A stretch of DNA of 64,000 bases from Zygnema circumcarinatum SAG 698-1b (Eukaryota > Plantae > Zygnematophyceae): assembly GCA_037447605.1 (NCBI GenBank), contig CM074814.1, positions 2,232,001-2,296,000 on the forward strand, in the 5' to 3' direction. Under the pieces are notes generated by a model. The model saw nothing but the letters and a program-made list of their open reading frames with translations. It was not told the DNA's origin and ran no database searches. Of the stretch, positions 6,267-52,909 are shown piece by piece. Position 1 is the stretch's first letter. Every line of letters starts with the position of its first letter. The position numbers and the translations under genes were made by a program.

Positions 6267-6368
6267 CCAATCGCGACTCGCCATGTCAGCAACTTTTCCA
6301 CGTGGCGAGTGGTTTCCAATCACGACTCGCCATGTCATCAATGTATCCACGTGGCGACTTGCGATTGG
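6267..6368. promoter_or_regulatory. Two tandem CCAAT/G-box dyads upstream of the YrhK-type gene
   Basis: CCAAT-N8-GCCATGT-N13-ACGTGGC twice; the second ends in N8-ATTGG. Confidence 0.6.
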
Positions 6369-6874
6369 AGAAGGCCCGGCCGTGCTTGGAAAGCCCTGCA
6401 GGCCTGCACTCGGCCGGCCTTGCAGGCGGCCCTGCATGGCGGATCCATGGCGGCTCGGCATCCTCGCCAGCGGCTGCTTCTCTCAGCCTCGTGATTCGTG
6501 ACTCATCGACTCGAGCCATGCAGGGCAGTCGCCATGCGAAACTCCTATGCTTTCCTGCATCCATCCAGATGCTTCCCTGGCGCCTTCCATCTCTCTCCCT
6601 CCAACACCACCTCTCCTCTCGCGGGTTTCCTCCTCTCAGGCACAGGCTGTGAGAGCTTCGAAGCGGTAAGAATAAATTTGATCGTTATTTCGAGGAAAAT
6701 TATTGTGTTTCTTTAATTTGAAACTGTGGTTTAGCCGGTTAAAAGGATGTTACAGCAGTGCAAGGAGGACGGCAGTTAGGGTCGATTATGAGTGGTAAGG
6801 GTTGGGGGTCTGAAGGGAGTTTGCTGGCGGGGGTATTTTGCAGGAAGGAATATAAAAAAAAAAAAAATCCGAAG

Positions 6875-9042
6875 ATGGTGAAGTTGACATCTGTGAGGAG
6901 CACACGATGCTACGGCTATCCAGAACCCTTGAATGATATAGCTGAGCTGGTCAACGCTCTTATATATCTAGTGGCGACGACTTTGCTACTCTCTGCTCTT
7001 GCATTTGATCTGAACCGAGAGTACGTTTCGTTCATTCTTTGAAATGCAACGTTTGTGCTGTGGCTTCCATCCAGTTATTCACTCGGTCAAAGCAGCCTAT
7101 CACGATGATGATTTGATAGGCTTGCTGTAAAGTTGCCTTTTACTCGTTGCTTTATTATTTACCATCGTTAACGGAACGCTGCATGGCTAATTTCCTCCTG
7201 TCTAGAATCCATTTGATACTCCGTCATTGTGAACAATGTTAAACACTGGACGCAAGCGAGAAGCTGAGAGTATCTAATTGCTAATCTCTTGTGCATGCCA
7301 AAGCTTCACGAAGAAACCGTCCTACATATGCATCTTTGTAATTTCTTCAAGTTACTGCAACTGAATGTGTACCAAACATCATTAGAGGAAGTCAAAGGTG
7401 CAAAGATTCTCATTGTATGTCGTAAGCCTTGTAGAGTGTGTGCCCAATTGAAGCCTGATGTCTGGATGTCTGCATGTGGTTTTTGCAGTCATCCGGGGGT
7501 GGTGCCATGGCTTCTGATGATCTCAGCGCTGCTGCTCGCAGCAGTGAACATCCATGACCTAATAGCACAGCTGGCAGGATTTGATTTCCGCCTCCCCCTC
7601 CTAACAGTAGATCCACAACTTGCGCTTGTGGAAGCCCTTGCGCCAATCTTACATACGATAGGGTTCCTTCTGGCGTTTGGAGGATTCCTTACACTTCACA
7701 TTGTAATCTTCGTTCCCAGCTACTGTTTATGCTCTATTTTTTTCACCGATTTGTGGCTTCAAGTATAATGATGTAATTAGGGGTGTGCCTTTGAAATACG
7801 TAAGAAAGATCCATCCAGCCAGCCAGCTACAACTTCACACAGGTTTGTAATTATATTGGATTAGATTAGTTTAGATTGTCGATAGACTTGATGATTGCAA
7901 CCAGGAAAAATACTGTATAAAATGCTGTTTTATTTTATTTCTGTTATTGCTTTCCTATTCATTTTATGCGTGACCTTCTCAGGCTGGCGACAAAGACTAT
8001 TCTAGTGACGTGGAGAGAAGTGGCCGAGAATCACTTTTGGCGGGGTTAGTGCTCCTTCTGATTGGCTCTATTCTGAACAATTTTCAGGTGCACGAACACT
8101 TCCACCAAATAATCCAAACATTTAGAAAGCATCTTTAGCATATAAGGAGGTTTCAGCATGAGCATTAGTTTATTTTGATTCGTGCTCATTCATGTTGTGG
8201 CTACCATTGGCTAATGATCTGTATACCGCGTTCTTCTCACTGCCTGCACTTCCTTTTCTGTGAAGGAATACGTTATGTAAAAAATAGCAAAAAATGACAT
8301 CCCTGTCTCCCCCGCATTTACATGAAGTTGATTTGACACAATACTCTGAGCAAAGCGATTGAATGCAGGTGTACGAACGTTTGGACCTTGTTTCTCAAGC
8401 AGAGCAGCATGCTGTCAGTATCCCAATGACGCTTGGATCGCTGCTTCTTCTTATCAGCGCAGTTGTTGGACTCGTGCAGTGGCCCAAACCTGCTTTGGGT
8501 CAGGCGACGGTACATGTTTTTCAGATCCAGCACAAACTTTCTTGTTTGTACGAGTAGGCTAAATCACCGGGGGCATTGCATATGGAACATCTTAGTTGAT
8601 GCCTTTCCTTCTTTTACCATGCGCTTATGTTTCCTTAAGCATCCGCCATCCGCCATTTGCCATTTCATCTGCCATGAATCACAAATTCAAACCCATTACA
8701 AACTCAATTTACATCTTTTAAATGAATTGGATGTTTGCATGTTTGCAGGATCTGTCTCGATGGCTGGCCCTTTCAGCAGGCATCCTGTGGTTCGTCTCCG
8801 CCCTCATCAATGTGGACCGAGTCCTCCGCGTTCAGGAGTCGGACGCCATTGGGAGAGTGGAGCCGCTGAGGAGAGGCGCTGCGGAGGTGTTGGAGGCAGC
8901 GAGGGAGCAGGGCACCCCCCTTATGGAGGCGCCGCGCGTGGAGACGGCGCCGGCGGCTCGCCGGACGCCGCCCCGCGATGTGGAGAAAGGGCAGCACGCA
9001 GACGCTCGCGCGGAGGTCGGGCAGAAGGCCGGCTTTCAGTAA
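6875..9042 (+). CDS. Plant multi-pass membrane protein of the MVKL..AR..YG family (YrhK-like), 5 exons
   Basis: MVKLTSVRSTRCYG..ELVNALIY; VNIHDLIAQLAGFDFRL..DPQLALVE; GSILNNFQVYER; LINVDRVLRVQESD..RVEPLRRGA. Canonical splice sites near 7020/7490/7703/7983/8087/8369/8510/8749. Confidence 0.85.
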
Positions 9043-10089
9043 GGATACTCTCTCTCTCTCTCCCCATCTCTCTCTCTCTCCCCCTCTCTCTCTCTCTCCC
9101 TTCCTCTCTCTCTCTCTCTTCCCCCCTCTCTCTCTCCTTTTCCCCACACACACTCTCTCTCTTTCCCCACTCACTCTCTCTCGCACACACACACACCCGT
9201 CATTTTAGCAGATTGTGTGAACGTCTTGTCCGACTAGCAGTGACTTTACTCGGGTCCCATTATTCATGTATATATGTTTTTTGCTTTTCAGGCCTGCGGA
9301 GCGGCCCTGGGCAGGATAGAAAGAGCTTGCAGACATTGGAGGGCGATTCAGGGCAATTCTGTAAGAAGGGAGGGTTGAGAGCAGGGCCTCACCACCTGAA
9401 AGACGCTCCTTTCGCAGCTCCCCTCCTTGTCGAATGAATGGAATGGCAGAGGCCGCAGTGCCCCACGTTTGGCGAAGTACCGTAAAGTGTGCAGCAGAAC
9501 TAGCGTAGGAAATTTGCTGTTCCCCCGTCACGAGTATTGGACGGGGTAAAGGACTAAGGATGCTTCGGGATTGGGGGATGATGATGATGATGATGATGAT
9601 GTGAAAGTAGGGCCATGCATGTACTGATGATGCCATTCATGGGGCATGGGTCGATGCATGGCATGTGCTCCACCTGCTGCAAGTACACGGGACGTGAGCA
9701 TCGTTGATTTTCACTTCGATTTTTTTGTCATGGGGGGCTTAAGAAGGAGCAAAATAAACAGTACGACGTTGTTTTGAATTTTTTGCAAGGAGAAAAATTT
9801 GTTGTATGTACCACAAATCACGCAATTCACAAACAGCAAAGAAGGCCAGTCAGGGTCTTTTCTAAAAGGGAACTATAGAAGCTTTCCATTTCATTGCCGA
9901 ACTTGTAAGATTTCAAAAAATGGCCTTCAAAAATCCTACATAGCTCAAGACCGGGTCTCCGCCAAAAGACAATTTTTTTTTCATTGGTTTAGGGTTTCTG
10001 GTTTTTCGGGACTTCTTGCCAAAATCTATTTGGTTGAGACCAGCAAAAAACGAGTATTTACCGAATGATGTGATCTGCACTTTAAAAGG

Positions 10090-10149
10090 GAAAAGCTCTA
10101 CTTCCTTCTCTATGTACAGGAAAAGCTCTACTTCCTTCTCTATGTACAG
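10090..10149. repeat. Perfect tandem duplication, 2 x 30 bp
   Basis: GAAAAGCTCTACTTCCTTCTCTATGTACAG twice. Confidence 0.9.
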
Positions 10150-10314
10150 CACCAGGACTCGTATACTCTCGACTTCAAAACAACGGGAAAAATGAAAAAG
10201 GGAAACAAGGGGGACACCTCACAAAATGTACACGAAAACTTGCCGCGTCTTTGACATCACAATCCTTTTTGACTTCAGAACCTTTCAAACTCACGTTTTC
10301 TTACACCATCACGA

Positions 10315-13167: not shown

Positions 13168-13329
13168 TTTTCCAGCTTTCTCTTCCCGTTTCTCTGAAAG
13201 GCTCTTTAGGGAAAATGCTCGTCAACTCATCTGTGTTCTGCGTCTAAAGATATCAGCTCATATTGGTCATAATCGTTCTGCAAATAATCTCACATAAGAG
13301 AGTTACCAAGTAAGATCTTACTTCAGCCT

Positions 13330-15407: not shown

Positions 15408-15481
15408 AAAGCTACCCTGCGAATTTCAGCCCTACCACTAATTGAACGAATTACACGAGATCTGCAAAGATCTCTCCCTTC

Positions 15482-15850
15482 CTAGTCCCGGGCAGATTCC
15501 TCCACTGCAGCTTCCACCCGCAGGAGCACGAAGCCAAGGGCAACGCCTGTCAACACAAGTCCACAAATGATAGGGACCACGCCGAAGATCTCGGCTGCAA
15601 TGCTGCACTCTGAAGCCAAAGCTCCTCCCTTGGAGCCACTGCTCCTGTAGCCAGCCATCACCTGGGCAAACTCCTCCTCCACAGACTTCTTGGGAGCCAA
15701 TCCGCTTACTGACTTGGTCACCTTCAAGCCAGCGAAGTTTCCAAGGGCAGGCACGCTCGCCTTGGCTGCCTTCCTCTGAGCCACTGCCGCCTTCACGGGC
15801 ACGACAGCTGCAACCGTCAAGCCACTGCAGGTAGATGCCATGGCCGCCAT
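15482..15850 (-). CDS. petM: Cytochrome b6f complex subunit 7 (PetM), nuclear-encoded, with transit peptide
   Basis: Ala/Val-rich transit peptide followed by AAEIFGVVPIICGLVLTGVALGFVLLRVEAAVEE. Confidence 0.93.
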   Translation of the reverse strand: MAAMASTCSGLTVAAVVPVKAAVAQRKAAKASVPALGNFAGLKVTKSVSGLAPKKSVEEEFAQVMAGYRSSGSKGGALASECSIAAEIFGVVPIICGLVLTGVALGFVLLRVEAAVEESARD

Positions 15851-17138
15851 TGCACGTCTGGCGATGATCCAAACTCAGACTTCCTTCCTCTCCCTCTCCC
15901 TGTATTGATCAAGGGCTTCCTGCAGCAACAATGGCGCTTGTCTGGCCGTCAAGAAAAAGGGCCAGGGGGGGCATCTGTGCCCCTTCCCCGTGACCCTGCC
16001 ACGTCATCATGCCCCATGACCCACTTGTGAACGTACACCATTCGTACAGTTCGTACATCCTTCCTTACCGTTAAATAGTTCAAAATTGCTGAATTGCGTC
16101 ACGTGACGGGGCATGGTGACGGGCATGGCGAATATGCCCCAACCCGTCCCCCACCCGCCCAGAGGGAGCCGCGCCGCCAGGCCCTGGAAGAGAGGGGAAG
16201 GGCCGCCTGGCTTATCCGCCGACGAGCGAGCGCATCTTGGTCGTCCACCAGAACCTCCACGCGTGTAATCGACGGCCAGATATCTCCCAGAGCGGCGATC
16301 GGAGATAATGGCCGATGACCACACGTGTGATCGACGGTTCACGATCGGCGATCGGAAGATAAAGGCGGTCCGCAGCGGCGGCCGCACGAGCGGCGAACGG
16401 CCGAGGGCGCGCCCGCGAAGCGCGCGAATGGGGGAACGCAAGCAGCGATATCGGGATATAATGTTGATACGATATGGTAACGTTGACACGATACGATACG
16501 ATACTCGTCGTAACGGTACAGGGAATCTTTACTTGACAGGATGCCGTGACGTCGACAGAGCTCCTTTCTGCTCGTGATGATGACGTCATTGTTTGACGGT
16601 TTCAAACCCGGGCATGTTTTGGTTTGCACTGGGGAGTTCGCCCAAACCCTAATTCTAGTCGTTGCTGATAAAGAAGGGCAAGGCTCAGTAATTTCGTTAA
16701 CATTGAACTGCCGCCTCTTCCATTTCTTGAGTCACTACTACACGGCAATGGCCATGTGAAAACAAGGAGCAGCAGGATACGCCTTGTATTCTTCAAGTAC
16801 AAGCGATCGTTCGAGCTTACCATGCAAGAAGGCCGCAACTTCAAATGCTTCCTGCTGGAGGCCACGGCTTTTCCTGCTTTTCTTAATTTCTCGATGCATG
16901 TTTGCTCTGTTCAAACGAGCAAGCAGCTGTGGTTCCTAAATTCTCCGAGCTTTTCTAATCTCTAACCATACGAAAATGCAGTAATCTTGCTCCTTAACCT
17001 CTTACATATGGAGGACCAACATGCGCCCCCTTATTGCTCAGAGCTGGCTGGCGCTGCCTTCCCTCTGGGAAGGAGACATTTCTCCAGCCACTGCAATGGC
17101 AGTTGCATTGCTTCCGCCTAAAAAGAAAAAAAAGTCTC

Positions 17139-17192
17139 CCAATGGGAGGCTGCCATGTGTACACAATTGTCTACGTGGCGGGCTCCCATTGG
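17139..17192. promoter_or_regulatory. CCAAT/G-box inverted dyad with no assigned gene
   Basis: CCAAT gggaggct GCCATGT N14 ACGTGGC gggctccc ATTGG. Confidence 0.5.
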
Positions 17193-18025: not shown

Positions 18026-21000
18026 CTAGGCACGCAGTGGAAGTGCCACATCCAAAGACTTTCCGTACTTCTTGTCTATGGCTTCAATGCACCATGCATG
18101 GCCATCATCAACAGTGGGCATGCGGACCTCCATGAGCTGCACAACTGGCTCCTCCTGATTTGGAACATAGACACCTGCCACAACCCTGAGGGTATCCATG
18201 GCGTCTACATCCATGCAAACGTTAATGATGGGGTTTCCCTTGGGGAGGGGCGGGATGCCTGATAGGAGGAGGAAGCCGAGGAGGTGGCCATCTTGGACGC
18301 GCTGCCCTTCACCTTCGTACACAGTTATAAGGGCCTCAGTCTGGACATAACGAACATATGCAAGTCAGCAAGGGCAGGAACTGTATGTAGTGAAGTCTTC
18401 AAAACAGTAAGGGTGAGATATGCCAATGAAGAGGAACTCACATCATTAGACTGCATTACTTCAGCCTAAAACAACCGAAACCGCAAAGCAACTAAGCAAA
18501 CGCCGTAGCGTCTGCCATTAGAAAGCATATGCAGGGCTTGCCAATCCCATTAGCAAAGGCCAGGACTTACCTGGTTATCTCGGGAAGTTGTCACCATCAC
18601 GTCTTTACGGTGGGGAATTGTGCTATTGCGATGCAGGACAGGATAGAGCTTTCCACCCTCTATTCCGATCCCAAGGCTGAAGGGCATGGCCTGAATAGTA
18701 AGCAGGTCGAGATTGCCTTCCGAATCCCTGCATGTCGAACATCACTCCATGGTATCAGGACTGAGTTGAGAGTTAAATATTTTATCTGCTGTTCGTGATA
18801 AGAGAAATTTGGGAGCAGACCAACCCCTTTCGAGACAGAAGATTCCCCAACATAATGATATTGAAATACCCACTTGATACCGCTAGTGATAGCTGCCTCC
18901 AGAGCTGCTCCATAAGCAACCTCCTGCCCAGGTTTCAGTTTCAGTGCATAGGGTGGCCTTCCTCCCATGATTTTTTGTAGCATGTTTCGGATGTAGGGGA
19001 TGTTCGAGGAACCTCCAACAAGAATATAGTCGTCGAGATTGCTAGCTTCCAATCGAGCATCCGTCAGAACCTGCACTAAAAAAAACCTGTTACCGGACAA
19101 GGCCATATTGAAAGCCACTCCTTGCCAAATATATGCTGCTCATTCTCTCATTCCAATTGTCAGAAAATGGACACATTAAGACGATCTTGAAAAAAATTGT
19201 GTGATACAAGATGCAACTACCTAAGGTACACACAACAGCTTAGACATTATGTCTTGGAATGAAGGCTAACCTGTTGCACGAGCTCTTGGCAGCGTGAGTA
19301 TACGGGCTCACTCCAAGCATCAACATCGGCTCGAGTGACCTTTATAACTTCCACATCCTTTGATGATTCAATTTTTGAAGGCACTGAAATCTCCGCATCC
19401 GTTTGTTCAGAAAGTGTAAGTAATGCCTGCATACATTGCACTCTGAGAGCACCTATTCTCTGCCGGTCCTCCTTTGTACGAGCATTTGTCGGCATCTGTG
19501 AAGCAGACAACGAGACACGCTGTTGATTAATGAAGTTACGTAATAAAAAAACAACATTCAGAATAGCATCATCTTCTCTCGCCAATACATGAAACGTTGT
19601 CTATCTGACCGTGATTGAATTTGGAGCCCTTGACTTGCAACAATCATCGCAAAAGGGAAAGAACCATTCCGCACCTTATTCTGGCCGACAAGCCTCTTCA
19701 TCATCAATCCCAGAATATCCTCGCCCCCAATGGCATCTCCTGTAATAGCCTTAATCTGGCAGAAGCCACCTGCTGTTGCTGCGATCGCGACATCGCAATG
19801 GCCTGCTCCAAAATTGAAAATGAGCGCAAGCTTCTCAACTCCGCTACCGAGATTTGCTGCACATTGTGAAGCGACAATACCCAATCGACCAGAGAATAAT
19901 TAATCAAAGATGGAAAAAATTCTCTTCGCCTAGATCCTTTCTTATCCACGCTATAGAGATGTAAAATCCCAACTCTACAGCCATTAGTTTGTTCATCTTA
20001 TTCGCTTTCGTCTAATACCAGGCTATTAAATGTCGAGAGTAGTAAAGTAATCCGTTAGAGGTAAGTAACGACTATTAAACGAGTTAAAACATCGAAATGG
20101 AACCATTGAGCGTCACCCTTGCTGCTTCTTACTTAGTTTCTCAATGGCTTCAAATACGATTTTTTTCTGACCTCTTCCGTTTGGACTGGAGGGAAGCATT
20201 CCATAAAAATACAATTCAAGAATATATTATTATTATTATTATTATTGAAGTACTTGCAGGAGAGAGAAAATGCACCAAGCAACTGTAGCTCCTATCCAAA
20301 GTAACACTGCTTATCGCCTATTTATTTCACTTTAATATCCTTACTTCCGGAACTTGCATCCTGTTGCTGCTGCTGCTGCTGCGCATATATCAGGGCTACA
20401 GGGCTTGGCTCCGGCATAATCCTCAGGGCATTCAGCCCTGCCATGCCACATGCTCGTTGGAGGCGAGCTTGTTGAAGCCGGGTGAAACAAGCAGGCATAG
20501 TGAGGACAATATTCTGGCAAACGCGGCCTGTTTGGGTTTCCGCAATGCCTTTCATTTGAAGCAGAATCATCGCCAGAACTTCTTCAGGTGTCGTGAAACG
20601 CCAGACTCCCTTTCGCATGATACCAAGGAGCGGCTTCACTCCTAATCCCAACGTTTGCACCAAGAAAGGAAGGAAGGCCGTCGCTCTTTCCACGACAGGA
20701 TCTGTATCTGTTCGTCCAATCAGTCTTTTTGCTCCATAGAGAAGTTCACCGGACAGGAGCTGCTCTTCCTTTGGACGCAAGTCCGCACCCATTGCTCCTG
20801 TTTCCTCCGAAAATTGCACATGAGAGGGAATGAGGTATGATCCCTCGCTATCAGTTTGCAGGACCTCCACTTTACCGTTCCTCCACACTGCAACACTGCT
20901 GTAAGCGCTCCCTAAATCGAAACCGAACGCAATACTCCCTGGCGCCTGCGAATCAACGGCATGATCGCTGTCACACAAAACCGTATACTGGTCCACGTCT

Positions 21001-21038
21001 GCATCAGTCATCGGATCAGGCCTATCCTTGGAAGCCAT
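18026..21038 (-). CDS. HSP70-8: Heat shock 70 kDa protein 8-like (Hsp70T-2 clade), about 6 exons
   Basis: KRLIGRTDTDPVV, LPFLVQTL, TTPEEVLA, MPEPSPVALIYAQQQQ, LIFNFGAGHCDVA, GGEDIL, LVGGSSNIP and the clade-specific C-terminus EVRMPTVDDGHAWC..KYGKSLD. Confidence 0.93.
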
Positions 21039-21467
21039 GGAAGTACGTAATTGAAATACTATAGATGCAGGAGATATTATCCCTCTCCCTAAATATAAAC
21101 CTTGCCGCCACTCCTCGTTTGAAAAGGAATACTGAATTCCACCTGCAGATAAAAAAAACTCCTAAATTCTCACTCGGAACCTGCTATACTCGAAAGGTTC
21201 CAAGACGCCAAGACAATACCGACTTTGACAGATTCGAGCCTTCTAGCACGTTTCGGGCACAACTTCCAGACGAAGTGGGAGAGAGAGAGAGAGAAATAGA
21301 GAGACGAGAGAGGGATAGGAAGCGGGAGAGAGAGCCATCTGGAAGGCTCCTGAAAGAGAGATGCATGGTGCCTGCTTGCTCGCTTTGGCCTTCGGAACAA
21401 ACAGGGCGCACAGAATTGCCCTCACCGTGGGTCGCAAGTACCAAGAGTACCATTCAAGCGAACTAAG

Positions 21468-21815
21468 CCAATCAGGACATGTCACGTGGAAACACTTTAT
21501 GATATGGCAGTCTTGGATTGGCCTAGTATATGCCACGTGCACAAAACTGCTGACACGGCAGTCTCGGATTGGTCCAGTCCCGCCGTTTTTTTGGGGGGCC
21601 CCGCCGCCGGGGATCTTTAGGGGCCGCGGGCCTTCTGGAAGGAGGAAAGGGACGGCTCGCACGTGTGGGACGGTCAATGCACACGTGACGATCGGCTATT
21701 GGTTTAACGGTCGGATGGTGACGTGTTCCAAGCAAGGAGAGGCCGCCATGTGGCATGCATGACGTGTGACGAATCGGATGGCGACTCTGGATATTGGACA
21801 AGTCTGCCACGTCGG
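21468..21815. promoter_or_regulatory. HSP70-8 upstream region: dyad, extra half-sites and a dense ACGT-box cluster
   Basis: Dyad at 21468-21521; half-sites at 21553-21572 and 21683-21702; seven ACGT cores in about 330 bp. Confidence 0.6.
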
Positions 21816-22039
21816 ACGGCTCCAGTTGGAAAGGTGGTAGTCCAACATAGAAACCAGCAGTTTTCAAAATATAAAGCTAGTTCTAAGTATAGCTGTAGCT
21901 ACACAGGAAATGAACTGCCGTCTGTTTGTCGCATGGAGTCCGCTCCCATCTGGTGACCGGAAACCACGAGCAGGATCATGGAAGGCGTACGTGAGCCGCC
22001 TTAGTATGGATAACATGAAATAGTTCCTAAGTCGATGCC

Positions 22040-22190
22040 CACATGACATGGTGCATGACATGATGCCATGATGCAAGACATATGATGCAAGACGTGATGC
22101 ATGTCATGATGCATGTCATGATGCAAAACATGATGTATGCCATGATGCATGTCATGATGCATGTCATGATGCCAATGGTGACAACATGAC
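22040..22190. repeat. Degenerate 12-bp satellite (CATGATGCATGT)n
   Basis: Visible periodic CATGATGCA units. Confidence 0.8.
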
Positions 22191-22515
22191 ATTGGGACGA
22201 GAGATGCCAACAAGGTAGGCGAGAGAAGAGAGGAAAGAGGGAGCTTAGGACTCCGCAAAACCCTCGTGATGAATGAACAGAGTGTATGAAAGTTCTCAAG
22301 ATTGAGAGTGAAGTTAAGTCAAAAGGGACTTTGCGTATATGTGTAAAAAGGAAAGTTACGCCTTTTGATTTCAGCAAACAAACGTAATGGACGAATAAGA
22401 CCCTCAAATTCCTCTCTCTAAGTTCCAGTCTGTAGAGGACCCCAATCAAAGCCCCCCCCCCCCCCCCCCCCCCCCCCNNNNNNNNNNCCCCCCCCCCCCC
22501 CCCCCCCTTGCTCCT

Positions 22516-36054: not shown

Positions 36055-36108
36055 GGCGGCGATAGAACCCCCCGTCTCGAACGCAGGGCTCCTATAGGCG
36101 AACATCGT

Positions 36109-36161
36109 CCAATTGGGAACGGCCACGTGTACATACTGTATACGTGGCGCGTTTTCATTGG
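36109..36161. promoter_or_regulatory. CCAAT/G-box inverted dyad 55 bp upstream of the PPR-SMR start codon
   Basis: CCAAT tgggaacg GCCACGT N13 ACGTGGC gcgttttc ATTGG. Confidence 0.62.
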
Positions 36162-36287: not shown

Positions 36288-36623
36288 CACATAGGGCGGA
36301 CCATTAGACCAACCATTTGACTGAGTGCCAACCATTGGCGCCAGACCGAAACAACCATTCGACTGGTTCGGAACCAGTGGATGCCAATGCTTGGCAACCA
36401 TTCGACTAGTTTGGAACCATTGGTTCCAATGCTTGCCAACCATTCGACTGGTTGCAAACCATTAGATGTCCAACCATTGGAAAACCAATGGATGGCAATG
36501 GTTGGAAATCCAATGGTTGGAAATCGACTGGTTGCCAACCATTCGACTGGTTGCCAACCAGTAGACGTCCAACCATTGCGATCCAATGGTTGTCAAATGG
36601 TTGCCGATCCTCTGGTCCCTGTG
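36288..36623 (-). mobile_element. Degenerate short copy of the same element family
   Basis: The reverse complement reproduces the left end (GGACCAG.GGATCGGCAACCATT.GACAACCATTGGAT.GCAATGGTTGGACGTCTACTGGT) and the right end (GTCTAATGGTCC). No central hairpin and no intact TSD. Confidence 0.75.
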
Positions 36624-39078: not shown

Positions 39079-39111
<33 letters not shown>

Positions 39112-41844: not shown

Positions 41845-42446
41845 GCATCAACAGTGACTGATTTTCCATTCCATGGGATCTGCTCTTATCCTTCCTCTCA
41901 AAAAATGGTTCAGCAGTTCCTCGTGGTTCCTCATGCTGGTTTTGTTCACCATCAGTTGGTTGGTCAATTTCCAGACTGACACAACTCACGAGCCACACCC
42001 CACATGTGAAGACCACATGACAAGTGATTTTTTTTTTTGCCCCAAAGAAATTGTGATAGTAGGTGGTTTCGAACTTTTGAAAAAGAAAAAACACACTAGT
42101 GTAATTCGAAACCGATACACGAAAATAAGCACTAACATCGAAATAAAAACTACTTTAAAAAACCAACAATTTCCATTTCGATATTTAAGTCTGCACCTCC
42201 AAAATTTGCTAACGCTCTCGAACAAAGGCGTGCGAAAAAATCCTTCGTTCTTTCGAGCTTCTACTTTAACTTACATTTTCCCCGCTGCCTCACTATTCAC
42301 AAAGCAAGCTATAACACTTCAAACCCCACCTCCTTCCCATCTCCCTCTCCCAACTTTCCTCCCCCCTCTCTCCCTCCCCCCCCTCCTCTCAAACCCCACC
42401 ACCTCTTAGTTATAGACCCATCCCCTCCTCCCTCCCTCCCTCCCTC

Positions 42447-42848: not shown

Positions 42849-45430
42849 GGTGTGTGACACAACCTGGAGGACGAGGGAGGGAGGGAGGGAGGAAGGGAGG
42901 GAGGGAGGGAGGAAGGGAGGGAGAGTGTGAGATGTTTTTCCGAGTTACAAGACAAGATGAGCACTCTCACACGATGAGATAAGCAAGAAAGAATGCTGCG
43001 GGTCTAGAACTGCTCGTTCAAGTGTTCATCTAAGGAACCATGACGCTTTTACTTAGAGAGAGGGCGAGAGAGAGAGAGGGGGAAAGAAAAAGAAATGTGG
43101 TTTCAGCTTTCCTTAAAAGGGAAATGCATCGGAGCACATGTTTTGTAGGTAGAATGTGCCGCGTGGTCTGTAAGCAGCAGGCCATGAGAAGCTACGCATG
43201 CAATAAAAATAAAAAATAAAAGGTCCTGCTTGCATATCTGTACTCTCTTCTTCAAGAGTAGGGGAAGTTCAAAGAACAAATGAAACAACTCGGAGAGACG
43301 ACGAAAATATGAAAATAAACCCAAAGAATGATCACTTTCGCATTTATAATAAAAAAACAATAATAATATGCAGACAAATAATAGTAATAATAATATGCAG
43401 ATCTCATCTCCCTCCCCTTTTCATTTCTTCATGGTCAGACGAAAACAAGAAACGCAGCAAACGCGGCTCTCCTTCACATGGTTCAGTATCTTAGGAACAG
43501 ACTAATCTCGTTCGCTTGCATTCACGTTCCATGAAAAGTTTCATTCGAAAAAACCCAGCCCCACCAGCTTCACAAAAGCTCAGAAATAAATACTAGCAGG
43601 AAAGAAAATGCTGACAAGTCAAGACATCATTGCATCGATGCAAACCAAAAGGTTGTCCCCACTCTCTCTCTGCCTCCCTCCATCTGCTCTCTCCCTCTGC
43701 CCCATCCATCCTCCCCTCTCCGCCTTGCCCAGCTTCTCCTCTCTCTCTCTTCCCTACCCCCCCATCTCCCTCCCCTACCTTCTCCATCTCTCCCCCTCTA
43801 ATAGCATTCATCGCTTACCCTCTCCTTCAACAAGACCCTCCTTCTCTCTCCCTTTCCCTCTCCCTCTCCCCCCCAACCCCATCACTCTAACACCATCCCT
43901 AACTCACCTCTCCTTACGACTCCGAGAATGCAGACTATAGCCCCTTAAAGAGACAACCTCCTCTCGGTCTTGTAAGCCCCCGAGCCCCCTTTCGCTGCAG
44001 CAGTAGTAAAGAGAGTAACCCTGCACCTGTTTAATAAGCAAGCTCTTCTGCCAGAAGAAAAACTTCCTCAGGCCTCCACCCTATATATGGAGGGAGGGAA
44101 GGGGGGGGGGGGGGGGGGGGGGGGNNNNNNNNNNGATTGCGTAGCCATAGCCATGGTGTGTGACACAACCTGGAGGACGAGGGAGGGAGGGAGGGAGGAA
44201 GGGAGGGAGGGAGGGAGGAAGGGAGGGAGAGTGTGAGATGTTTTTCCGAGTTACAAGACAAGATGAGCACTCTCACACGATGAGATAAGCAAGAAAGAAT
44301 GCTGCGGGTCTAGAACTGCTCGTTCAAGTGTTCATCTAAGGAACCATGACGCTTTTACTTAGAGAGAGGGCGAGAGAGAGAGAGGGGGAAAGAAAAAGAA
44401 ATGTGGTTTCAGCTTTCCTTAAAAGGGAAATGCATCGGAGCACATGTTTTGTAGGTAGAATGTGCCGCGTGGTCTGTAAGCAGCAGGCCATGAGAAGCTA
44501 CGCATGCAATAAAAATAAAAAATAAAAGGTCCTGCTTGCATATCTGTACTCTCTTCTTCAAGAGTAGGGGAAGTTCAAAGAACAAATGAAACAACTCGGA
44601 GAGACGACGAAAATATGAAAATAAACCCAAAGAATGATCACTTTCGCATTTATAATAAAAAAACAATAATAATATGCAGACAAATAATAGTAATAATAAT
44701 ATGCAGATCTCATCTCCCTCCCCTTTTCATTTCTTCATGGTCAGACGAAAACAAGAAACGCAGCAAACGCGGCTCTCCTTCACATGGTTCAGTATCTTAG
44801 GAACAGACTAATCTCGTTCGCTTGCATTCACGTTCCATGAAAAGTTTCATTCGAAAAAACCCAGCCCCACCAGCTTCACAAAAGCTCAGAAATAAATACT
44901 AGCAGGAAAGAAAATGCTGACAAGTCAAGACATCATTGCATCGATGCAAACCAAAAGGTTGTCCCCACTCTCTCTCTGCCTCCCTCCATCTGCTCTCTCC
45001 CTCTGCCCCATCCATCCTCCCCTCTCCGCCTTGCCCAGCTTCTCCTCTCTCTCTCTTCCCTACCCCCCCATCTCCCTCCCCTACCTTCTCCATCTCTCCC
45101 CCTCTAATAGCATTCATCGCTTACCCTCTCCTTCAACAAGACCCTCCTTCTCTCTCCCTTTCCCTCTCCCTCTCCCCCCCAACCCCATCACTCTAACACC
45201 ATCCCTAACTCACCTCTCCTTACGACTCCGAGAATGCAGACTATAGCCCCTTAAAGAGACAACCTCCTCTCGGTCTTGTAAGCCCCCGAGCCCCCTTTCG
45301 CTGCAGCAGTAGTAAAGAGAGTAACCCTGCACCTGTTTAATAAGCAAGCTCTTCTGCCAGAAGAAAAACTTCCTCAGGCCTCCACCCTATATATGGAGGG
45401 AGGGAAGGGGGGGGGGGGGGGGGGGGGGGG
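42829..45430. repeat. Apparently identical 1.3-kb direct duplication across N gaps (probable assembly artefact)
   Basis: 42829-44124 is repeated at 44135-45430 (offset 1306). Both copies end in poly-G followed by 10 N. Confidence 0.85.
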
Positions 45431-45440
45431 NNNNNNNNNN

Positions 45441-45472
<32 letters not shown>

Positions 45473-46114
45473 CGTGGAGATCTGCGCGTGCTTGAGCGCG
45501 CACGTGAAGAGCGGCTCACGGCCGCCACGCGTGACGTGGATGGATGGTCCCGGGGAGCGGCCTTCCATGCGCGCAGTTCTACGGGACGCGTAGTTCAGCG
45601 CGCAGTTTTACCGGCTCACGTAGACGGATGAAATGGAGGACTCTGATTGGCCGGGAATTGCGCGGGCCAATCGGAAGGGAGCTGAGGGGTGATCTATACG
45701 CCGTAGCGTGAGACGAGAAACGGAGCTGAGGGTTACATTTGTCGCCACGGGTCGCTTCCGTACATTTTGGCTGGCTGGCTGGCTGGCTCCCTCCCTCCCT
45801 AGTCCCTGCCCTTGTCGTGGGCTGTGGGTATAATATAGTGAGGGAGTGCTCTCTCTCCCTCCGCAACATGGTGGTGGCTCTGGCTCGCTAGAGCACACAC
45901 CCTTCCCACCCTCCCTCCCTCCCTCCCTCCCTGCCTGCCTAGCCCATTCAAACCATAGAACACAGAGTGACATTGTCTGCATGTTTTTTGTTTGGGATGG
46001 CACGGTTGCAATGCTCGCGATGGTGAGGGCACCCTCAAAGCGAGGACGGGTGAAGCCAGCCCTTCATGGGACCTAGCGCCCCGACACTGCGTTGTGTTGG
46101 CAACTTGCGCAATT

Positions 46115-46155
46115 GCCATGCCATGCCATGCCATGCCATGCCATGCCATGCCATG
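46115..46155. repeat. (GCCAT)n microsatellite
   Basis: About 8 perfect units. Confidence 0.9.
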
Positions 46156-46257
46156 CGAGAGCAACTTGACCCATATTGTTGTTGGGAGCAAAGGGCATCC
46201 CTAGTGAGAGAAATCAACGTCACTAGGTACCAATCCGTGGACCACAGGAGACACCTT

Positions 46258-46311
46258 CCAATAGAAATGCGCCACGTGTACAATAGTACTTACGTGGCGA
46301 GCTTCCATTGG
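46258..46311. promoter_or_regulatory. CCAAT/G-box inverted dyad upstream of the PPOX-like gene
   Basis: CCAAT agaaatgc GCCACGT N14 ACGTGGC gagcttcc ATTGG. Confidence 0.62.
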
Positions 46312-46556
46312 TCTGGTGCTTGAGTATTGGCCGCAGCGGAGAAACGGCCTTTGCTCGCCTCGCTCTCGCTCACTCTCACATCCCCCTCTCTCCCTCTCGT
46401 CCTCTCGCCCTCCATCTCCCCCTCTCTCCATCTCTCCCACTCTCCCTCTCCACCCTCTCCCTCTCCTCTGCGGGATTTCGCGCTCCGCAGGGAGGGAGCT
46501 TGATGCAGCTGCCGAGCCATATGTAACCCTGATTTAGGGTTGTCTCTTTACCGGCC

Positions 46557-48326
46557 ATGGCCAGTGCGCCTGCCTGGGTGCAGGCCCTTCAGCACGCCAT
46601 CAACCTGAACCGCAGCGCGCGGCATGTCAAGCATGTGCAGGTGGGTGCTTTGCCTGGGTTCATCGGTATTGCGCTTTCATGTGTATCTTATTAAACATCA
46701 TATCAAGGAAAGGGACCGTCACACACACAAAAGCTATCAGATATAGCTGCTTGGAAACATCTTGAACTTTTGCGCAGAGTGAACCGAGGAGTTCTATTGA
46801 TCGTGCATTGTTCCTGAATTAAAAAAAAAATCAGTTCAAGAAAAAACTATTAAAAAAAATCAATATAAGCTGCGGCATCCCCCCCTATTTTTTCTTTTTT
46901 TTTTCATTCTTGAATTTGTTTATAGCTTGCAACAGTGAGGCCAGACGGCAGTCCCGCATGCCGTACGATTGTGTTCCGAAGCTTCTCGAATGATCACCGC
47001 TTACTGTTCTGCACCGATTCCAGGAGCAACAAGGTGAGTTGAACGAGCCTGCTTGTAGGCCTGGACAGCATTTTGCGCGAAGCTGTGGGGGATGCCGAGA
47101 TGAAGTCTGCGAATGACGTAGGATTGTAGGAGAAGTAGGCGTTGAGGAGGCTTTGATCCCATTGTGTGTGAGTTAATATAGAGGCAGCAAAGGATACTGA
47201 AAAAGACGGAAGGAGAAAGAGGCAAAAAGAGGCTAGGACTGATAGAGAGTACTTTTCAGGTGCCTTACCAGTCGAAATTGAGTGCCGATATTGTGAGAGA
47301 GTGAATGGTGTGGGGTATTTGGTGACTTCTAACCAACTTGGTACTGCTCCCTTCCGTCATCGCGTCATATCGTATCGGTGTCTTTTTTTTTTTTTTTTTT
47401 CCATTTTGATGATAGTCTATAAAGACATAGAAGAGAACAATCCGGAGCTATGAGTGGTTGTACGTAAAGTACGGTTGCAATTTGACATCACCAATGTGAC
47501 CCCCCTTTCTGCGAGGCTTCAGGCTGCGGAGGAGTATGGGCATGAGCGGAGAGCGGAAGTGTGTTGGTACTTGACTGTTTCCCGCGAACAGTTTCGGCTC
47601 AAGGGCAGTCTGGACCTTGTGGGCGCGGACTGCAGCGATCTCTTGAAGCAGGAGGAGCGTCTCAAGGTGCGGAGGGTGACTTGAGCAAATGACCAATGAT
47701 GAATGATGTCCAATATCAGCACTTCTGAATGGGTGTGTGCTCTGCACAGAGTCGACAGGATGCTGCATTTGCATCCCTTCTTTAACATGCTAGTGAGTTA
47801 TGTGCTGTAGATCGTTCTCCCTCTCCTTCCTTCCTGCCTCTTCTCTCACTTGCAACCTTTCTCCCTCGCTTCCCTCCTCCCCCTTCCCTTGCGTGTGTCT
47901 TGACTTCTTTTGACTTAACAGTGCATGGAACCTGGGGAGCAGGTGTGGAAAGGAATGTCGGAGGTTGCCAGAGAACAGTTCGGATGGCCACATCCCGGCC
48001 TTCCTCGAGCTGCGAGTGAGCGTCTGTACAGCGGTCCTTCACTTGATCAAGATTCTCTACCTCTTGATACCTTTTGTCTGCTCTCTCTCCTTGTGGAAGA
48101 AGTGGACCACCTTCAGCTCAAGGTGAGAGGCAACCTCTCTCTCTCTCTCTGTCACACTCGTACAAATGGAGTTCAGAAGCATTCTTCACGCCTTCGGACG
48201 AGTCGCTTAGCTAAGCCTTGCCCTTTTATTGACCATGTGAAGGCCAACCGAAGGTTTAAGTATGAGCGGCAACGAGGCGAGAATGCGAACGAGCAAACGT
48301 GGAGCAAAGTAGAAGTCAATCCGTAA
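46557..48326 (+). CDS. Pyridoxamine 5'-phosphate oxidase-like FMN-binding protein (At2g46580-type), multi-exon
   Basis: APAWVQAL..VQ|LATVRPDGSPACRTIVFR; AEVCWYL..REQFRLKG; FCLLSLLVEEVDHLQLK; WSKVEVNP*. Confidence 0.9.
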
Positions 48327-49511
48327 CCTCACTCGGATGCTAATGAGGAGCAGCATCATCACTCACTCTCTAAGGCGAGGCTGTTTGGGACAAGGAGTTG
48401 ATAAAGCATTGGACCAAAAAAAGTCTGTCCGTTTGCAAGGAACCAGAGAGTAACGGTGAAAGAATACGGCTTTTTTCCTATGGCCAGACCTTCACACCGC
48501 CAAATCCTCCATGCAAAGCCATGCAGTTTCCATGGTTCCAGCGTGCGATGTTCTGTGCGCTCTCCAGTTTCACCGAGCGTCATTCCTGCATGCATGAGTT
48601 TGCAATATTCCTGACCACAGTCTGTTCCTCGTGGTTCCCTCCCCATAGTGTTGACTTTGTCCATGTACATTTGATGGCCTCATCACATCATTTTCCCCAT
48701 ATTCCAAGCCACCCACCCATTAATTTATCCTACCGTACCTTCCTCCGATGGCCTACATTTTCCATTGATTACCTCTCCTCTTTCTAGAAAGAAAGAGAGA
48801 GCAGGCCGAGACAGACAAATACAACCTTGGAAAGCTTCTAGCTTTGAAAGTAAACAAGACGGAACGGAGGACTGGAACGGTGCACATAGACATGTAGACC
48901 GACCGACCGACCGAGCCCCAGAAAAGAAATTTAAGGAAATTTGCAGCTATGGCACTGGGCCCTCCCAGGCCCAAGAGAGAAAGACAAATTCGTACGAATG
49001 CCGCCTGTCCGTACCATACGGCGGAGACAAGTACAGTATATGCCGGCCCATGGCAATCCCAACGCCATTAATGACGTACTTTTTTGTCGTACACTAATGT
49101 ACGGTTTTGCCTGGCTGGCAGCCTCCGCTCGCACAGTTACTCACCAGAATGGCCTTTGTGTGTGTCGTTCACCTTCATGCCAAGATCCAGCCGTACAGAT
49201 CAACTTGTCGTTTAGGCAGCGGACGCGCATCCGCACCGTATCCGTTTGCGCCCAAAAGTACGGTATGAAAGAAATGTAAGAAAGAAAGTCTTTTCGATTT
49301 CGGCAAATGGCGGCGCGCCACGTGGCTCTCCGTTCGTGCGGGCGCGCCCGCCCGCCTGCCGGGCCGCGGCCCGAAGCTTTAGGGGGAGGGCGCCTTGCAA
49401 GGTGTGGGCCTGAGAGCAGGGAGGGAGGGAGGGAGTGAGGGACCTGCAGGACTCTTGGAAGGGGGGGGAGGAAGAATTAGGGTTAGCGTTAGGGTGAGGG
49501 GGAGTGCTGGC

Positions 49512-50990
49512 ATGGGACTATGGGGACGCATATTGGAGAACATGCCATTGACAGACATAGAGGAAGCCTTCTCGTTCGGTCCCGAAGTAGGGAGTGGGTC
49601 GCTTGGAGTGGTGAGGCTCTGCTATGAAAGGGTTTCAGGGGAGGTGTTTGCTTGCAAAACCATTCAGAAATGCATATTGAGGGAGGAGGAGAGCATAGAG
49701 GACGTGCGCAGGGAGGTGAAGATAATGCGGCTACTGGCGAGGGAGGCGCATCCGCAGGTGGTGCAGCTGAAAGCGGTGTTTGAAGACTCTGCAAGCCTGC
49801 ATTTGGTGATGGAGTATTGCCGCGGAGGTGAGCTCTTCGGCGTTCTTGCAGAGAGAGGGAACTTCACGGAGCCGGAGGCGGCGGACATATTCAAGCAGAT
49901 AGTGAAGGGTGTGCAGTTCTGCCACTCGCAAGGAATTTTGCATCGCGATTTGAAGCCGGAGAACGTACTGGTGACGGAAACTCTTTCTGGAGAACTCAAG
50001 GGTTTGGGCAGCCATGGCTCCTTCTTGCGAAACTTCAGTATGGGAAGCGCCAGCAGCTCGGGCATCTCACTCACTTCAGAAGACAGCCACCGCGAGGCAC
50101 GGAGCGTTTTCTCCGAGCCTAACACGTGGGAGAGGCTTGATAGTGACAGCTGGCAGGGAGGAAGCCCTAGAAGGCAGGATAGCGTGGGATGGGAGGTGAG
50201 AGGAGGAGTGGAGGGAGCAGCACAGTCGGAAACTGTGGGAGAGCTTCCAACCTCGAGCACGGAAAGCTGGGAGAGAGAGGAAGGCGGTGAATATGATGAC
50301 GACGATATCCATGCAAGCAGAAGTAGCCGAGAGGAAACCAACATGCGAGTAAAGCTCGGAGATTTCGGCCTTGCAGTTTTTATGGATTTGGATGGAAAGC
50401 ACCGCCCTTTAGGCAGCAAGGCCAGCGAGGTTCAGTGCCCTACTCCACTCTACAGTGCGCCGGAGCTCGCGTTTGCAAGGGCGTATGGTAGGGAGGCGGA
50501 TATGTGGAGTCTGGGAGTGATTCTATATGCACTTCTCGGAGGGGAGCTGCCATTCAGGGGTTCAACGCAGAAGGAGCTGGAGCACTGCATTCGAAGAGGG
50601 AGGCTTAAGCTTTCAAGAGGCGCATGGCTTTCTGTTTCTGACTCTGCGAAATCTTTAATCCGGAGTTTGCTTGATACAAACCCGCAGAAGCGGCCGCTTA
50701 CTGCAGAAGTTCTCGAGCATCCATGGGTAGAGCAGGGGCAGCATTTGCACTTGAATAACAACCGGAAACGCCTTGAGCGGTCAAAATCTGTCGGAGCAAA
50801 CAAAATTTTGTCGAGACGAGCACACTTTGAGAGGCTCTTCGTGTGGACTCCCAGCCCTCCTTCTACGCCTAACAGCTGTGCAGGAACTCCAACTAGTAAG
50901 ACTGCAAGCGCACAGGGGAGCAGAACACCGCCGTTCTCTCCTTTTTCGAAATTCTCTGGGAAGACCGCCCATGCTTCGCCACGTGGGTGA
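49512..50990 (+). CDS. Intronless CAMK-group Ser/Thr kinase (CDPK/PEPKR-related catalytic domain, no EF-hands)
   Basis: GSGSLGVV, FACKTI, LHLVMEYCRGGELF, HRDLKPEN, DFG, YSAPE, DMWSLGVILY, all in one ORF. Confidence 0.92.
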   Translation: MGLWGRILENMPLTDIEEAFSFGPEVGSGSLGVVRLCYERVSGEVFACKTIQKCILREEESIEDVRREVKIMRLLAREAHPQVVQLKAVFEDSASLHLVMEYCRGGELFGVLAERGNFTEPEAADIFKQIVKGVQFCHSQGILHRDLKPENVLVTETLSGELKGLGSHGSFLRNFSMGSASSSGISLTSEDSHREARSVFSEPNTWERLDSDSWQGGSPRRQDSVGWEVRGGVEGAAQSETVGELPTSSTESWEREEGGEYDDDDIHASRSSREETNMRVKLGDFGLAVFMDLDGKHRPLGSKASEVQCPTPLYSAPELAFARAYGREADMWSLGVILYALLGGELPFRGSTQKELEHCIRRGRLKLSRGAWLSVSDSAKSLIRSLLDTNPQKRPLTAEVLEHPWVEQGQHLHLNNNRKRLERSKSVGANKILSRRAHFERLFVWTPSPPSTPNSCAGTPTSKTASAQGSRTPPFSPFSKFSGKTAHASPRG

Positions 50991-52751
50991 AAGTGGGGAG
51001 AGAGAGGCAGCCTTGCAACTGCCTCGGAAAAAAAGAGGAAAACTGGTAAGGATATTGAATGAATTCAACCTCTAGATAATGAGTTCAACATCTCTTTTGC
51101 CCTAAGAATGCTACGGGTCAAACTCTGAGAAATCTCAAGGTAACTATTTTTGTTCTCAGATGTAATCGTATCTTAAGAAACTTGTTTGTACCCCTTTAAT
51201 AACCTGGCGGTGGGCCTGAACAGGTGCAGAGAGAGCTGCTGCCCTGATGAGCTGAGTTCAAGCACATGCTGTAAGCTACCTCGTTTTCTCCAGCCTATCG
51301 CAACCCCTCATGTGCCCCACCATTGCTTCAGCAATCAGGCCCTGCGCAAAATTTTCTGTTGTGAAGCAGGCAATGCGGACTGCAGCCAAGGACGAGGTAT
51401 ACTCCTCACCATTGGTATTCTAGTTTCTGCAGACACAGTAGGCTGCTGATGAGATGGTTTTGTTTTCCATTCCGTCATGCAAGCAATCAGCACAAAGGGG
51501 ATTTCCTTCTTCCAGATGTACTCAGGTTTTTCCTTTGAATTTGTTATGATGCCTGCAGACAGCCAGTAAATCCTGGGCCTCGAATAACCTGAGTGTGATC
51601 CCATATTCGAGCTTCGCAAGAAGTTTTCAGCAGACTTGGTTTCTCAGGTGGGATGCCATGTGAGAAAGGCATCCATGGAGCTTCTGCGGCAGAACACATC
51701 AACTGAAGCATTCGCCATTTTGCCTTTTGCAGAGAGTAGGGACTATTATGACGACTGTTTTGTCTATGGCGACAAGAGTAGGCAGGAGGCATTCTTTATA
51801 GGGGTCTGCTTCTGCAACTGTCGCATTGGGTAAGCAGAAGTCTCACTTAAGGCTGCTATTTAAAGAGCTCGCACTCGTGATCCTTAATGCCTGGACACAA
51901 AGAGGTTATAGTTTGATTAAGTCAGCGGAATTCTGTGCAAATAGATGGGGGTGACGTAATCCGCAGGCACGTCATCATGGAAAAATAAACGCCATGGGGT
52001 CGTTGAGCTAACTCAACCACCATTGCCATAGCAAACATAGTTGTTGGCAGTTTGCACTCTGCGGAAGGGCAGGGTGAATAATGATCGCAGGGCGAAGGCA
52101 GCAAGCTTCTGCGATTTGACAAGCACAATCACAAGTAGAATTCCTCAGCGAAGGGGTGAGTGAATAGCCTTTTTCCGGTTCCTGCAAAGTGCAGGAAGTG
52201 GTGTTAGGGTTCCAAGTAGCGAGGTTGACACCCAATCAACCGCCCTGTTTTGCTTGACGAATATCTCGCGAATGTGGCATCAGAGGGCTGTGCTTTATCT
52301 CTTGTTTCTAAGGCCACATTAATAAACAAAGTCCTACAGTGCCCACACGCGTATGGACCTATCATGGCCCATCATCACCCACACCTATCACGCATCATCG
52401 TCCGCAACAAATTTATCCGAATTGGAATTGAAAATTAAGTAAAAATAGTCTTTACTCCTTTGTTGGTTCTACTACGTCGAGGCTAAAAAAGACGACAGCT
52501 TTAGAACTGCATACAGTACTTCTCAAAAAAACATCCGCACATAACCGTACATATTCATCGTTCGTACATACCTTATTTACGGGTTTTCTAGAGCAAAATT
52601 AGGGGACAGTCTCCTATTGTAGGTCCAAATCCCCTATTTGAGGAGGCCTGGTACATGGGAGCCTCCAGCGATAAAGTACACACCTTTATAGTACCGTACC
52701 ATTAGCCGGAGCGGTCGGCTTCCATTAAAGGCACCCTCTTTGAGCCGAAAG

Positions 52752-52909
52752 CCAATGAAAATATGTCACGTAAGCAGGTATGACACGTGGTGTCTTTTAA
52801 TTCGATGAAACTAAATCGAAAGGCTTACAGCAATATAGATAGAAACGCACCTTTACGAATGCAGAATTTCCATTGGATATCTGTACGACACGTGGCGAGC
52901 CGCGATTGG
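52752..52909. promoter_or_regulatory. Degenerate dyad plus a perfect half-site upstream of the P450
   Basis: CCAAT gaaaatat GTCACGT N13 ACGTGGT N8 ATTCG (52752-52804); ACGTGGC gagccgcg ATTGG (52890-52909). Confidence 0.55.

Follow-up and report, generated by a model that had tools for sequence, protein, structure and literature searches.

Results

Genes and composite sites in the window

The window analysed here is a 64-kb stretch of the Zygnema circumcarinatum genome. The genes recognised in it include a membrane-protein ORF, an HSP70-family gene, a PPR gene, a Peptidase_M16 gene, a Pyridox_oxase_2 (PPOX-like) gene, a single-exon protein kinase gene, a P450 gene and PetM. Gene starts were read from open reading frames, Pfam and one layout of RNA contigs. 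The loose end of the PetM RNA contig had no match within the window. Codon-usage scoring of the open reading frames was swamped by GA/CT microsatellites. A composite site recurs among these genes; its half-site reads CCAAT-N9-CCAYGT and has the same layout as the ER-stress element ERSE-I. Two half-sites facing each other form a dyad, and six dyads were found, at a density of approximately one locus per 10 kb. The total length of every dyad was 53 or 54 bp, and within it 17-18 bp separate the ACGT cores and 48-49 bp the CCAAT boxes.

The first dyad (6316-6368, 53 bp) has CCATGT as the left core and CCACGT as the right core. It is preceded by a 49-bp tandem partial copy of itself (6267-6315), which holds an intact left half, CCAAT-N9-CCATGT, and ACGTGGC, and lacks the outer ATTGG. 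The second dyad occupies 17139-17192 (54 bp). In the third (21468-21521, 54 bp), the left core is TCACGT and the right core has decayed to CCATAT. A minus-strand half-site with the core CCGTGT at 21553-21572 is a tandem copy, about 51 bp off, of the right arm of this dyad, and another minus-strand half-site, with the core TCACGT, lies at 21683-21702 within the ACGT-rich promoter of the HSP70-family gene. CCACGT is the core of both arms in the dyads at 36109-36161 (53 bp) and 46258-46311 (54 bp). The sixth dyad (52752-52804, 53 bp) is degenerate; its cores are TCACGT and CCACGT, and its right outer CCAAT reads CGAAT. A perfect minus-strand half-site follows at 52890-52909, 52 bp upstream of the P450 ATG. 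The coordinates of these dyads and half-sites had been reported in an earlier note on this DNA, and all of them were confirmed when the sequence was re-checked. Two half-sites were absent from that list, i.e. a degenerate plus-strand one at 49304-49323 (CAAAT-N9-CCACGT) and a perfect minus-strand one at 54973-54992. The latter lies in a P450 coding exon (reading ...GTRGDAGLE...) and is probably not a promoter element. The assembly gaps at 22478-22487, 44125-44134 and 45431-45440, within poly-C/poly-G runs, are at least 776 bp away from every site; therefore, no element is touched by them.

Spacing of the half-sites and excess over chance

Since CCAAT (148 occurrences) and CCACGT (42 occurrences) are each common in the window, the pattern could be a coincidence of short motifs, due to chance or base composition. 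However, 20 half-sites with at most one mismatch were present in the window, compared to 1.79 +/- 1.30 expected, and none of 100 shuffles reached 20. The exact dyad occurred four times in the 64 kb, against an expectation of 0.00. When CCAAT-Nk-CAYGT was scanned for k from 0 to 24, there were 14 matches at k = 10 and 0-3 at each other k. Facing pairs of 40-120 bp had lengths of 53 or 54 bp only, besides lengths of 102 and 105 bp that were due to the tandem copies, and 8 of the 23 GCCACGT in the window had a CCAAT at exactly N8. The earlier note had claimed a fixed geometry and suggested a comparison with alternative spacings. Run within the window, this comparison gave one sharp peak, and the claim is borne out by the single N9 spacing and by the 53 or 54 bp of all six pairs. 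The CCAAT box and CCACG are exactly nine bases apart, so that the ERSE layout proposed for each half is matched exactly. Furthermore, the pattern was essentially absent from 596 Gb of prokaryote genomes, in which one exact dyad was found, on a bacterial contig with 66% GC; a scan of JGI metagenome contigs yielded no exact dyad. Chance coincidence is thus refuted by the spacing scan, and its probability is close to nil.

Position-specific conservation and state of the cores

The information content of the sites was highest at CCAAT and G-CCACGT, and spacer positions 11-12 were at background. Spacer sequences varied between loci; spacer lengths were exact. Two conserved features fall outside the search pattern. 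A G preceded CCAYGT in all 11 composite sites, compared to 21 of 73 occurrences elsewhere (p = 7e-6), and the NF-Y-type flank CCAAT[C/G][A/G] was present in 10 of 16 composite sites, compared to 42 of 132 elsewhere (p = 0.02). The ACGT core, as found in the ABRE/G-box, was intact in 8 of the 12 dyad arms and at least once in every dyad; the four broken cores read CCATGT (three arms) and CCATAT (one arm). Since the broken cores represent changes of the CpG-decay type, some of the arms could be non-functional and symmetry could be dispensable. It follows that not every locus requires a four-part complex with strict symmetry.

A palindrome of this kind could also act through its structure, whether as a cruciform in DNA or as a hairpin in RNA, instead of being a set of protein sites, and three dyads did fold strongly as single strands (-14 to -20 kcal/mol, z = -5 to -7). 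However, two dyads folded no better than shuffled sequence, and chimeras of arms taken from different loci folded nearly as well as the native dyads (mean -9.4 versus -11.4 kcal/mol), so that the stems are due to the motifs that all dyads share, not to any matching of the spacers. Moreover, 95 of 720 permutations of the arms equalled the folding energy of the native dyads, spacer identity was only slightly higher within a dyad (3.8/8) than between dyads (2.8/8; p about 0.05), and outside the motifs the two arms of the six dyads were not found to be complementary. On these folding results, the structural explanation was rejected and is considered very improbable.

The dyad might instead be, or recently have been, a small mobile or transposon-borne palindrome, and it would then be close to genes because of an insertion preference or a later co-option, not because of an ancient promoter grammar. 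It resembles transcription-factor sites carried by MITEs or MULEs in being a short multi-copy unit near genes. The local tandem copies (6267/6316 and 21521/21572), the CpG-decay type of the core variants, and a 9-13 nt outer flank (GAGCATCGT-like) recurring at three arms speak for such an origin. Unlike MITE/MULE-borne sites, however, the six Zygnema loci lack terminal repeats, their flanks are not shared, and their spacers are dissimilar from locus to locus. Around the six dyads, a search to a distance of about 600 bp gave no enclosing terminal inverted repeats of at least 14 nt, no direct repeats were seen in the immediate flanks of the dyads, and their 200-bp flanks had no likeness beyond the short outer extension. 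The whole-length likeness of copies was lacking, with spacer positions 11-12 at background and the flanking extension at three arms only. Differing spacers with exact lengths, and conservation at the protein-contact positions, are unlike decaying repeat copies. In addition, a fold-back element at 58.7-60.7 kb of the window contained no such site even with up to two mismatches. The transposon explanation was rejected for these six loci on the absence of terminal repeats and shared flanks, and we judge a mobile origin to be quite unlikely.

Position relative to gene starts

Five of the six dyads precede a gene start by 55-510 bp, in support of the closeness to genes that the earlier note had described, and the distances from dyads or half-sites to the ATG were 55, 52/157, 246 and about 507 bp. 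On the side facing the gene, none of the six dyads had the motif TATA[AT]A within 250 bp.

The dyad at 6316-6368 precedes the plus-strand membrane-protein ORF, the ATG of which (about 6875) is about 507 bp downstream of it. A pyrimidine-rich leader lies between them, and it likely contains an intron. The dyad at 21468-21521 is 64-82 bp upstream of the 5' ends of two spliced RNA contigs of the minus-strand HSP70-family gene (21404 and 21386), contig ends being only approximate start sites. The N-terminus of this HSP70-family protein has no signal peptide, and further ACGT elements are packed into its promoter. The 3' end of the same gene, where an RNA contig reaches down to 17306, is separated by a 150-bp gap from another RNA contig (16390-17152). 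The dyad at 17139-17192 lies in this gap, and the latter contig terminates inside it; no recognisable gene could be assigned to this dyad. RNA contigs of two deep runs crossed the dyads at 17139 and 21468 uninterrupted, which counts against a promoter role of these two.

The dyad at 36109-36161 is upstream of two genes. The likely ATG of the minus-strand PPR gene (about 36054) is about 55 bp away from it, and the ATG of the plus-strand Peptidase_M16 gene (36997) is 836 bp away. The dyad at 46258-46311 precedes the plus-strand Pyridox_oxase_2 gene, with 246 bp and a CT-rich leader between it and the ATG (46557). The degenerate dyad at 52752-52804 is 157 bp upstream of the P450 ATG (about 52961), and the P450 product carries a plastid-type leader. 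The degenerate half-site at 49304-49323 is about 190 bp upstream of the protein kinase ATG (49512).

Of the gene starts that could be recognised in the window, about half had the element. The search for gene starts carries an ascertainment bias, as it was guided in part by the presence of a dyad. PetM and Peptidase_M16 have no such element; therefore, the module is not universal. The neighbours of the dyads are unrelated to each other (HSP70-family, PPR, Pyridox_oxase_2, plastid-type P450 and membrane-protein ORF). Judged by gene identity, none is an ER chaperone, the class of target expected for ERSE-I, and the use on non-ER-stress genes suggested previously is thus supported.

The same composite and the same factors could nevertheless mark a condition-specific regulon, responding to ABA and desiccation, heat or unfolded proteins. 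The core of the ABRE is ACGTGGC, further ACGT elements crowd the HSP70-family promoter, and ERSE is stress-responsive in Arabidopsis and mammals (PMC5499772). However, the dyad neighbours have unrelated housekeeping or organelle functions (PPR, plastid-type P450, PPOX-like and membrane protein), with no ER chaperone among them, and a narrow regulon would not be this dense, with the element at roughly every second gene start recognised in 64 kb. We consider such a regulon rather unlikely; the share of gene starts with the element fits a general module better.

Other genomes and orthologous promoters

No half-sites at N9 spacing were found in Closterium loci totalling 83 kb (partly redundant) or in a 22.6-kb Arabidopsis lyrata locus with seven genes. 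This suggests that the high density of the element is not general, in a sample of other genomes too small for a statement on lineages. The nearest PPR orthologue (50% identity) was on a Logan contig that resembles a transcript and has no promoter, and a full-library search found no further PPR orthologues. Among PetM relatives, one 4.8-kb contig was obtained, in which the element was absent.

Discussion

ERSE-I is bound by NF-Y together with ATF6 in mammals and together with bZIP28/bZIP60 in Arabidopsis. The ERSE sequence, CCAAT-N9-CCACG, is conserved between mammals and plants and is bound by NF-Y and ATF6 at the fixed N9 spacing (PMC5499772). The Zygnema half-sites have the identical layout and spacing and are promoter-proximal as well, with the bZIP half-site extended to a full ACGT core. 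Unlike ERSE-I, they are paired face to face at a fixed total length of 53 or 54 bp, and they occur at non-ER-chaperone genes at about one locus per 10 kb. Our literature searches found no description of an inverted paired form of an ERSE-type composite, just as the earlier note had stated that none was known.

Other known systems share part of this arrangement. The ABRE/G-box of plant ABA promoters has the same ACGTGGC core and likewise needs a partner at short distance. However, the ABRE partner is a coupling element (CE) or DRE at loose spacing, whereas in Zygnema a CCAAT box takes this place, always at the same distance, and the unit is symmetric. Animal TATA-less promoters with multiple CCAAT boxes also have two boxes at a fixed distance near the starts of unrelated genes, and NF-Y acts there as a promoter organiser that helps to place the start site. 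In those promoters, the CCAAT boxes are direct repeats about 32-33 bp apart that are not known to have an obligatory ACGT partner, whereas the Zygnema boxes are inverted and 48-49 bp apart. The Arabidopsis FT gene reportedly has enhancer modules in which a CCAAT box and a G-box stand together in one regulatory block, as they do here. The FT modules are distal enhancers of a single locus; to our knowledge, no fixed N9 or palindromic geometry is known for them.

With their fixed geometry, excess over chance, position-specific conservation, closeness to gene starts and diverse genes, the sites are best read as a promoter-proximal composite of NF-Y and an ACGT-binding (bZIP) factor, which would be used as a general module and not as an ER-stress-only switch; we place the probability of this reading at about 0.6. 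The putative factors are named from motif resemblance alone, and their binding, their cooperation and their effect on transcription are what we infer by analogy. As in ERSE, an NF-Y histone-fold trimer would sit on each CCAAT box and aid the loading of an ACGT-binding bZIP dimer onto the adjacent CCACGT. The unit sits within roughly 50-250 bp of the start of transcription at unrelated genes with TATA-less promoters, where the pair may open the promoter and help to position the start site. More speculatively, and with considerable doubt, the NF-Y/bZIP composite could be the default architecture of TATA-less core promoters in this alga, which belongs to a little-sampled part of the plant lineage. 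A symmetric complex of two NF-Y trimers with two bZIP dimers, assembled on 54 bp, would then open chromatin and set the start site, and what land plants and animals retain as the ER-stress-specific ERSE would be the specialised relic of a general NF-Y/bZIP promoter grammar that is older.

The ERSE layout is one of the few strictly spaced composite elements common to animals and plants, and it is regarded as a stress switch. An alga with a mirror pair of this layout on about half of the promoters, as in this window, would offer a natural system for studying how NF-Y helps bZIP proteins onto DNA, and such a lineage also bears on which of the two roles is the older, stress switch or general promoter element. 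In addition, the element is a compact, well-defined candidate synthetic promoter for streptophyte algae, for which genetic tools are few.

The inverted ERSE-type dyad recurs at a fixed spacing

An earlier note had described an inverted dyad of two facing half-sites, and this architecture was read directly at all six places (dyads starting at 6316, 17139, 21468, 36109, 46258 and 52752). The half-site, written there as CCAAT-N8-GYCAYGT, is CCAAT-N9-CCAYGT with G at the last spacer position, and thus has the exact ERSE-I layout CCAAT-N9-CCACG. At one mismatch or fewer, 20 half-sites were found on both strands of the window, compared to 1.79 ± 1.30 expected, and none of 100 shuffles reached this number. 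The spacing control proposed in the note was performed within the window with CCAAT-Nk-CAYGT, where k = 10 equals N9 before CCAYGT. Among k values of 0-24, k = 10 gave 14 matches and each other k gave 0-3, which excluded chance. When facing pairs of 40-120 bp in total length were searched, six were obtained, all 53 or 54 bp long; other facing pairs occurred only at 102 and 105 bp and arose from local tandem copies. The exact dyad pattern was present four times in the window (0.00 expected). Across 596 Gb of prokaryote genomes it had a single match, which lies on a bacterial contig of 66% GC and has no G ahead of CCACGT; none was found in JGI metagenome contigs. The assembly gaps, which fall within poly-C and poly-G runs, come no closer than 776 bp to a site and so affect no element. 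Between 42800 and 45440, a 1306-bp segment (~42.85-44.12 kb) is followed at once by a second copy of 100% identity (44.15-45.43 kb). Both copies terminate in an identical poly-G run with a 10-N gap, which looks like an artefact of assembly at this homopolymer rather than a real duplication.

Sequence conservation within the dyad

Alignment of 17 half-sites revealed high information content limited to CCAAT and G-C-C-A-C/T-G-T. Weaker preferences were seen elsewhere: CCAAT tends to be followed directly by C/G then A/G, positions 9-10 of the spacer favour purines, the base preceding the G is more often a pyrimidine, and position 25 favours A. Spacer positions 11-12 were at background. Two features outside the search pattern marked the composite sites, that is, CCAAT and an ACGT-type core at this spacing. 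The G before CCAYGT was present in 11/11 composite sites and in 21/73 other CCAYGT (p = 7e-6), and CCAAT[C/G][A/G], a flank known for NF-Y sites, in 10/16 composite sites and 42/132 others (p = 0.02). Furthermore, GCCACGT occurs 23 times in the window, and in 8 of these cases CCAAT lies at exactly N8. At least one intact ACGT core was retained in every dyad; the variant cores (CCATGT in three arms, CCATAT in one, CCGTGT in one single half-site) are the kind of change that CpG decay produces. The centre of the best three dyads also reads GCCAYGTGTACA ... TGT(A/C)TACGTGGC or TACTTACGTGGC. Three dyads folded strongly as single strands, as would be expected if the dyad acts as a hairpin or cruciform. 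However, arms taken from different loci and joined as chimeras folded almost as well (95/720 permutations), and the pairing therefore stems from the shared motifs.

Transposon spread is a possible origin, but transposon copies do not describe these six loci. No inverted repeats of at least 14 nt enclose the dyads within about 600 bp, the spacers are unrelated from locus to locus, and the 200-bp flanks have nothing in common except a short outer extension, like GAGCATCGT, ahead of three arms. Moreover, the fold-back element at 58678-60698 lacks CCAAT-N9-CCAYGT, even at two mismatches.

Position of the dyads relative to genes

The note had placed five of the six loci shortly upstream of genes. 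This held for five dyads, which lie 55-507 bp from gene starts (64-82 bp from contig ends for the HSP70-family gene); the 17139 dyad had no assignable gene. The likely ATG of the PPR gene (- strand, Pfam PPR matches) is at ~36054, and the 36109 dyad lies 55 bp away from it. A short tandem/inverted unit array at 36290-36620 (periods 42, 25, 19 and 15; core like CCAACCATTCGACTGGTTG), rich in CCAAT/ATTGG, directly adjoins this dyad in the interval that separates PPR from Peptidase_M16. The PPOX-like gene, with Pyridox_oxase_2 over two exons, starts at 46557. Its distance to the 46258 dyad is 246 bp, and a CT-rich leader lies in this interval. The P450 gene, recognised by a Pfam match and by PPGP and WKRQRR exons, starts at ~52961; the degenerate 52752 dyad is 157 bp away, and a perfect half-site at 52890-52909 is 52 bp away. 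Another perfect half-site lies within a P450 coding exon. The P450 introns at 54300-56300 are full of long GA/CT and GAG/CTC microsatellites, which yield many spurious long ORFs. The membrane-protein ORF starts at ~6875, and 507 bp separate this start from the 6316 dyad.

The HSP70-family exons were defined by RNA sequencing run X1 together with runs X2-X4, whose GT..AG introns on the - strand indicated that the material was RNA. The first exon ends at 21404 (X1) and 21386 (X2), which leaves 64-82 bp up to the edge of the dyad at 21468. In the deeper runs X3 and X4, contigs (20345-21899) pass from exon 1 over the promoter dyads and reach past 21899, which could reflect a start site farther upstream, an overlapping transcript in the divergent direction or carried-over DNA. 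Further ACGT elements outside composite sites are dense in this promoter at 21484-21812 (CACGTG, CCACGTG, ACACGTGAC, GACGTGT, TGACGTGTGAC and CCACGTC), and CATGACATGATGCATGTCATG-type units, some direct and some inverted, form an array upstream of it at 22040-22195. The 17139 dyad sits in a 150-bp gap past the HSP70-family 3' end, and an X1 contig (16390-17152) terminates within it.

If up to 20 gene starts are assumed as a rough bound, zones reaching 510 bp upstream of them cover 16% of the window, and the presence of 5/6 dyads in such zones gives p about 5e-4, a value only indicative because genes were sought near dyads. Three gene starts were located independently of the motif; the composite element was absent at those of PetM and Peptidase_M16, and the kinase start had a degenerate half-site only. 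The single-exon PetM gene (15485-15850, - strand; cytochrome b6f subunit), whose relatives carry Pfam PF08041, was very abundant in X1 (word depth 3281), and the 19-nt loose end of its contig, at 15935, matched nothing in the window.

The dyad as a putative promoter module

In ERSE, NF-Y is bound at CCAAT and ATF6 at CCACG, with the spacing fixed at nine (PMC5499772). In line with the note, which knew of no description of this form, no inverted or palindromic ERSE pair was found in the literature, within incomplete journal coverage. The N9-spaced half-site was absent from small samples of Closterium (83 kb) and Arabidopsis lyrata (22.6 kb) and from one 4.8 kb algal contig. By analogy with ERSE, we infer all binding steps at the dyad: NF-Y would occupy both CCAAT boxes, and each core would be bound by a bZIP dimer that recognises ACGT. 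Within the dyad, the distance from one ACGT core to the other is 17-18 bp, and from one CCAAT box to the other 48-49 bp.

The dyads might also mark a stress regulon; however, the functionally unrelated genes and the high element density argue against a narrow one. On the gene side, TATA[AT]A was not found within 250 bp of any of the six dyads, and a pyrimidine-rich tract was present within this distance in 4/6. We propose that the dyad unit serves as a general module at TATA-less promoters.
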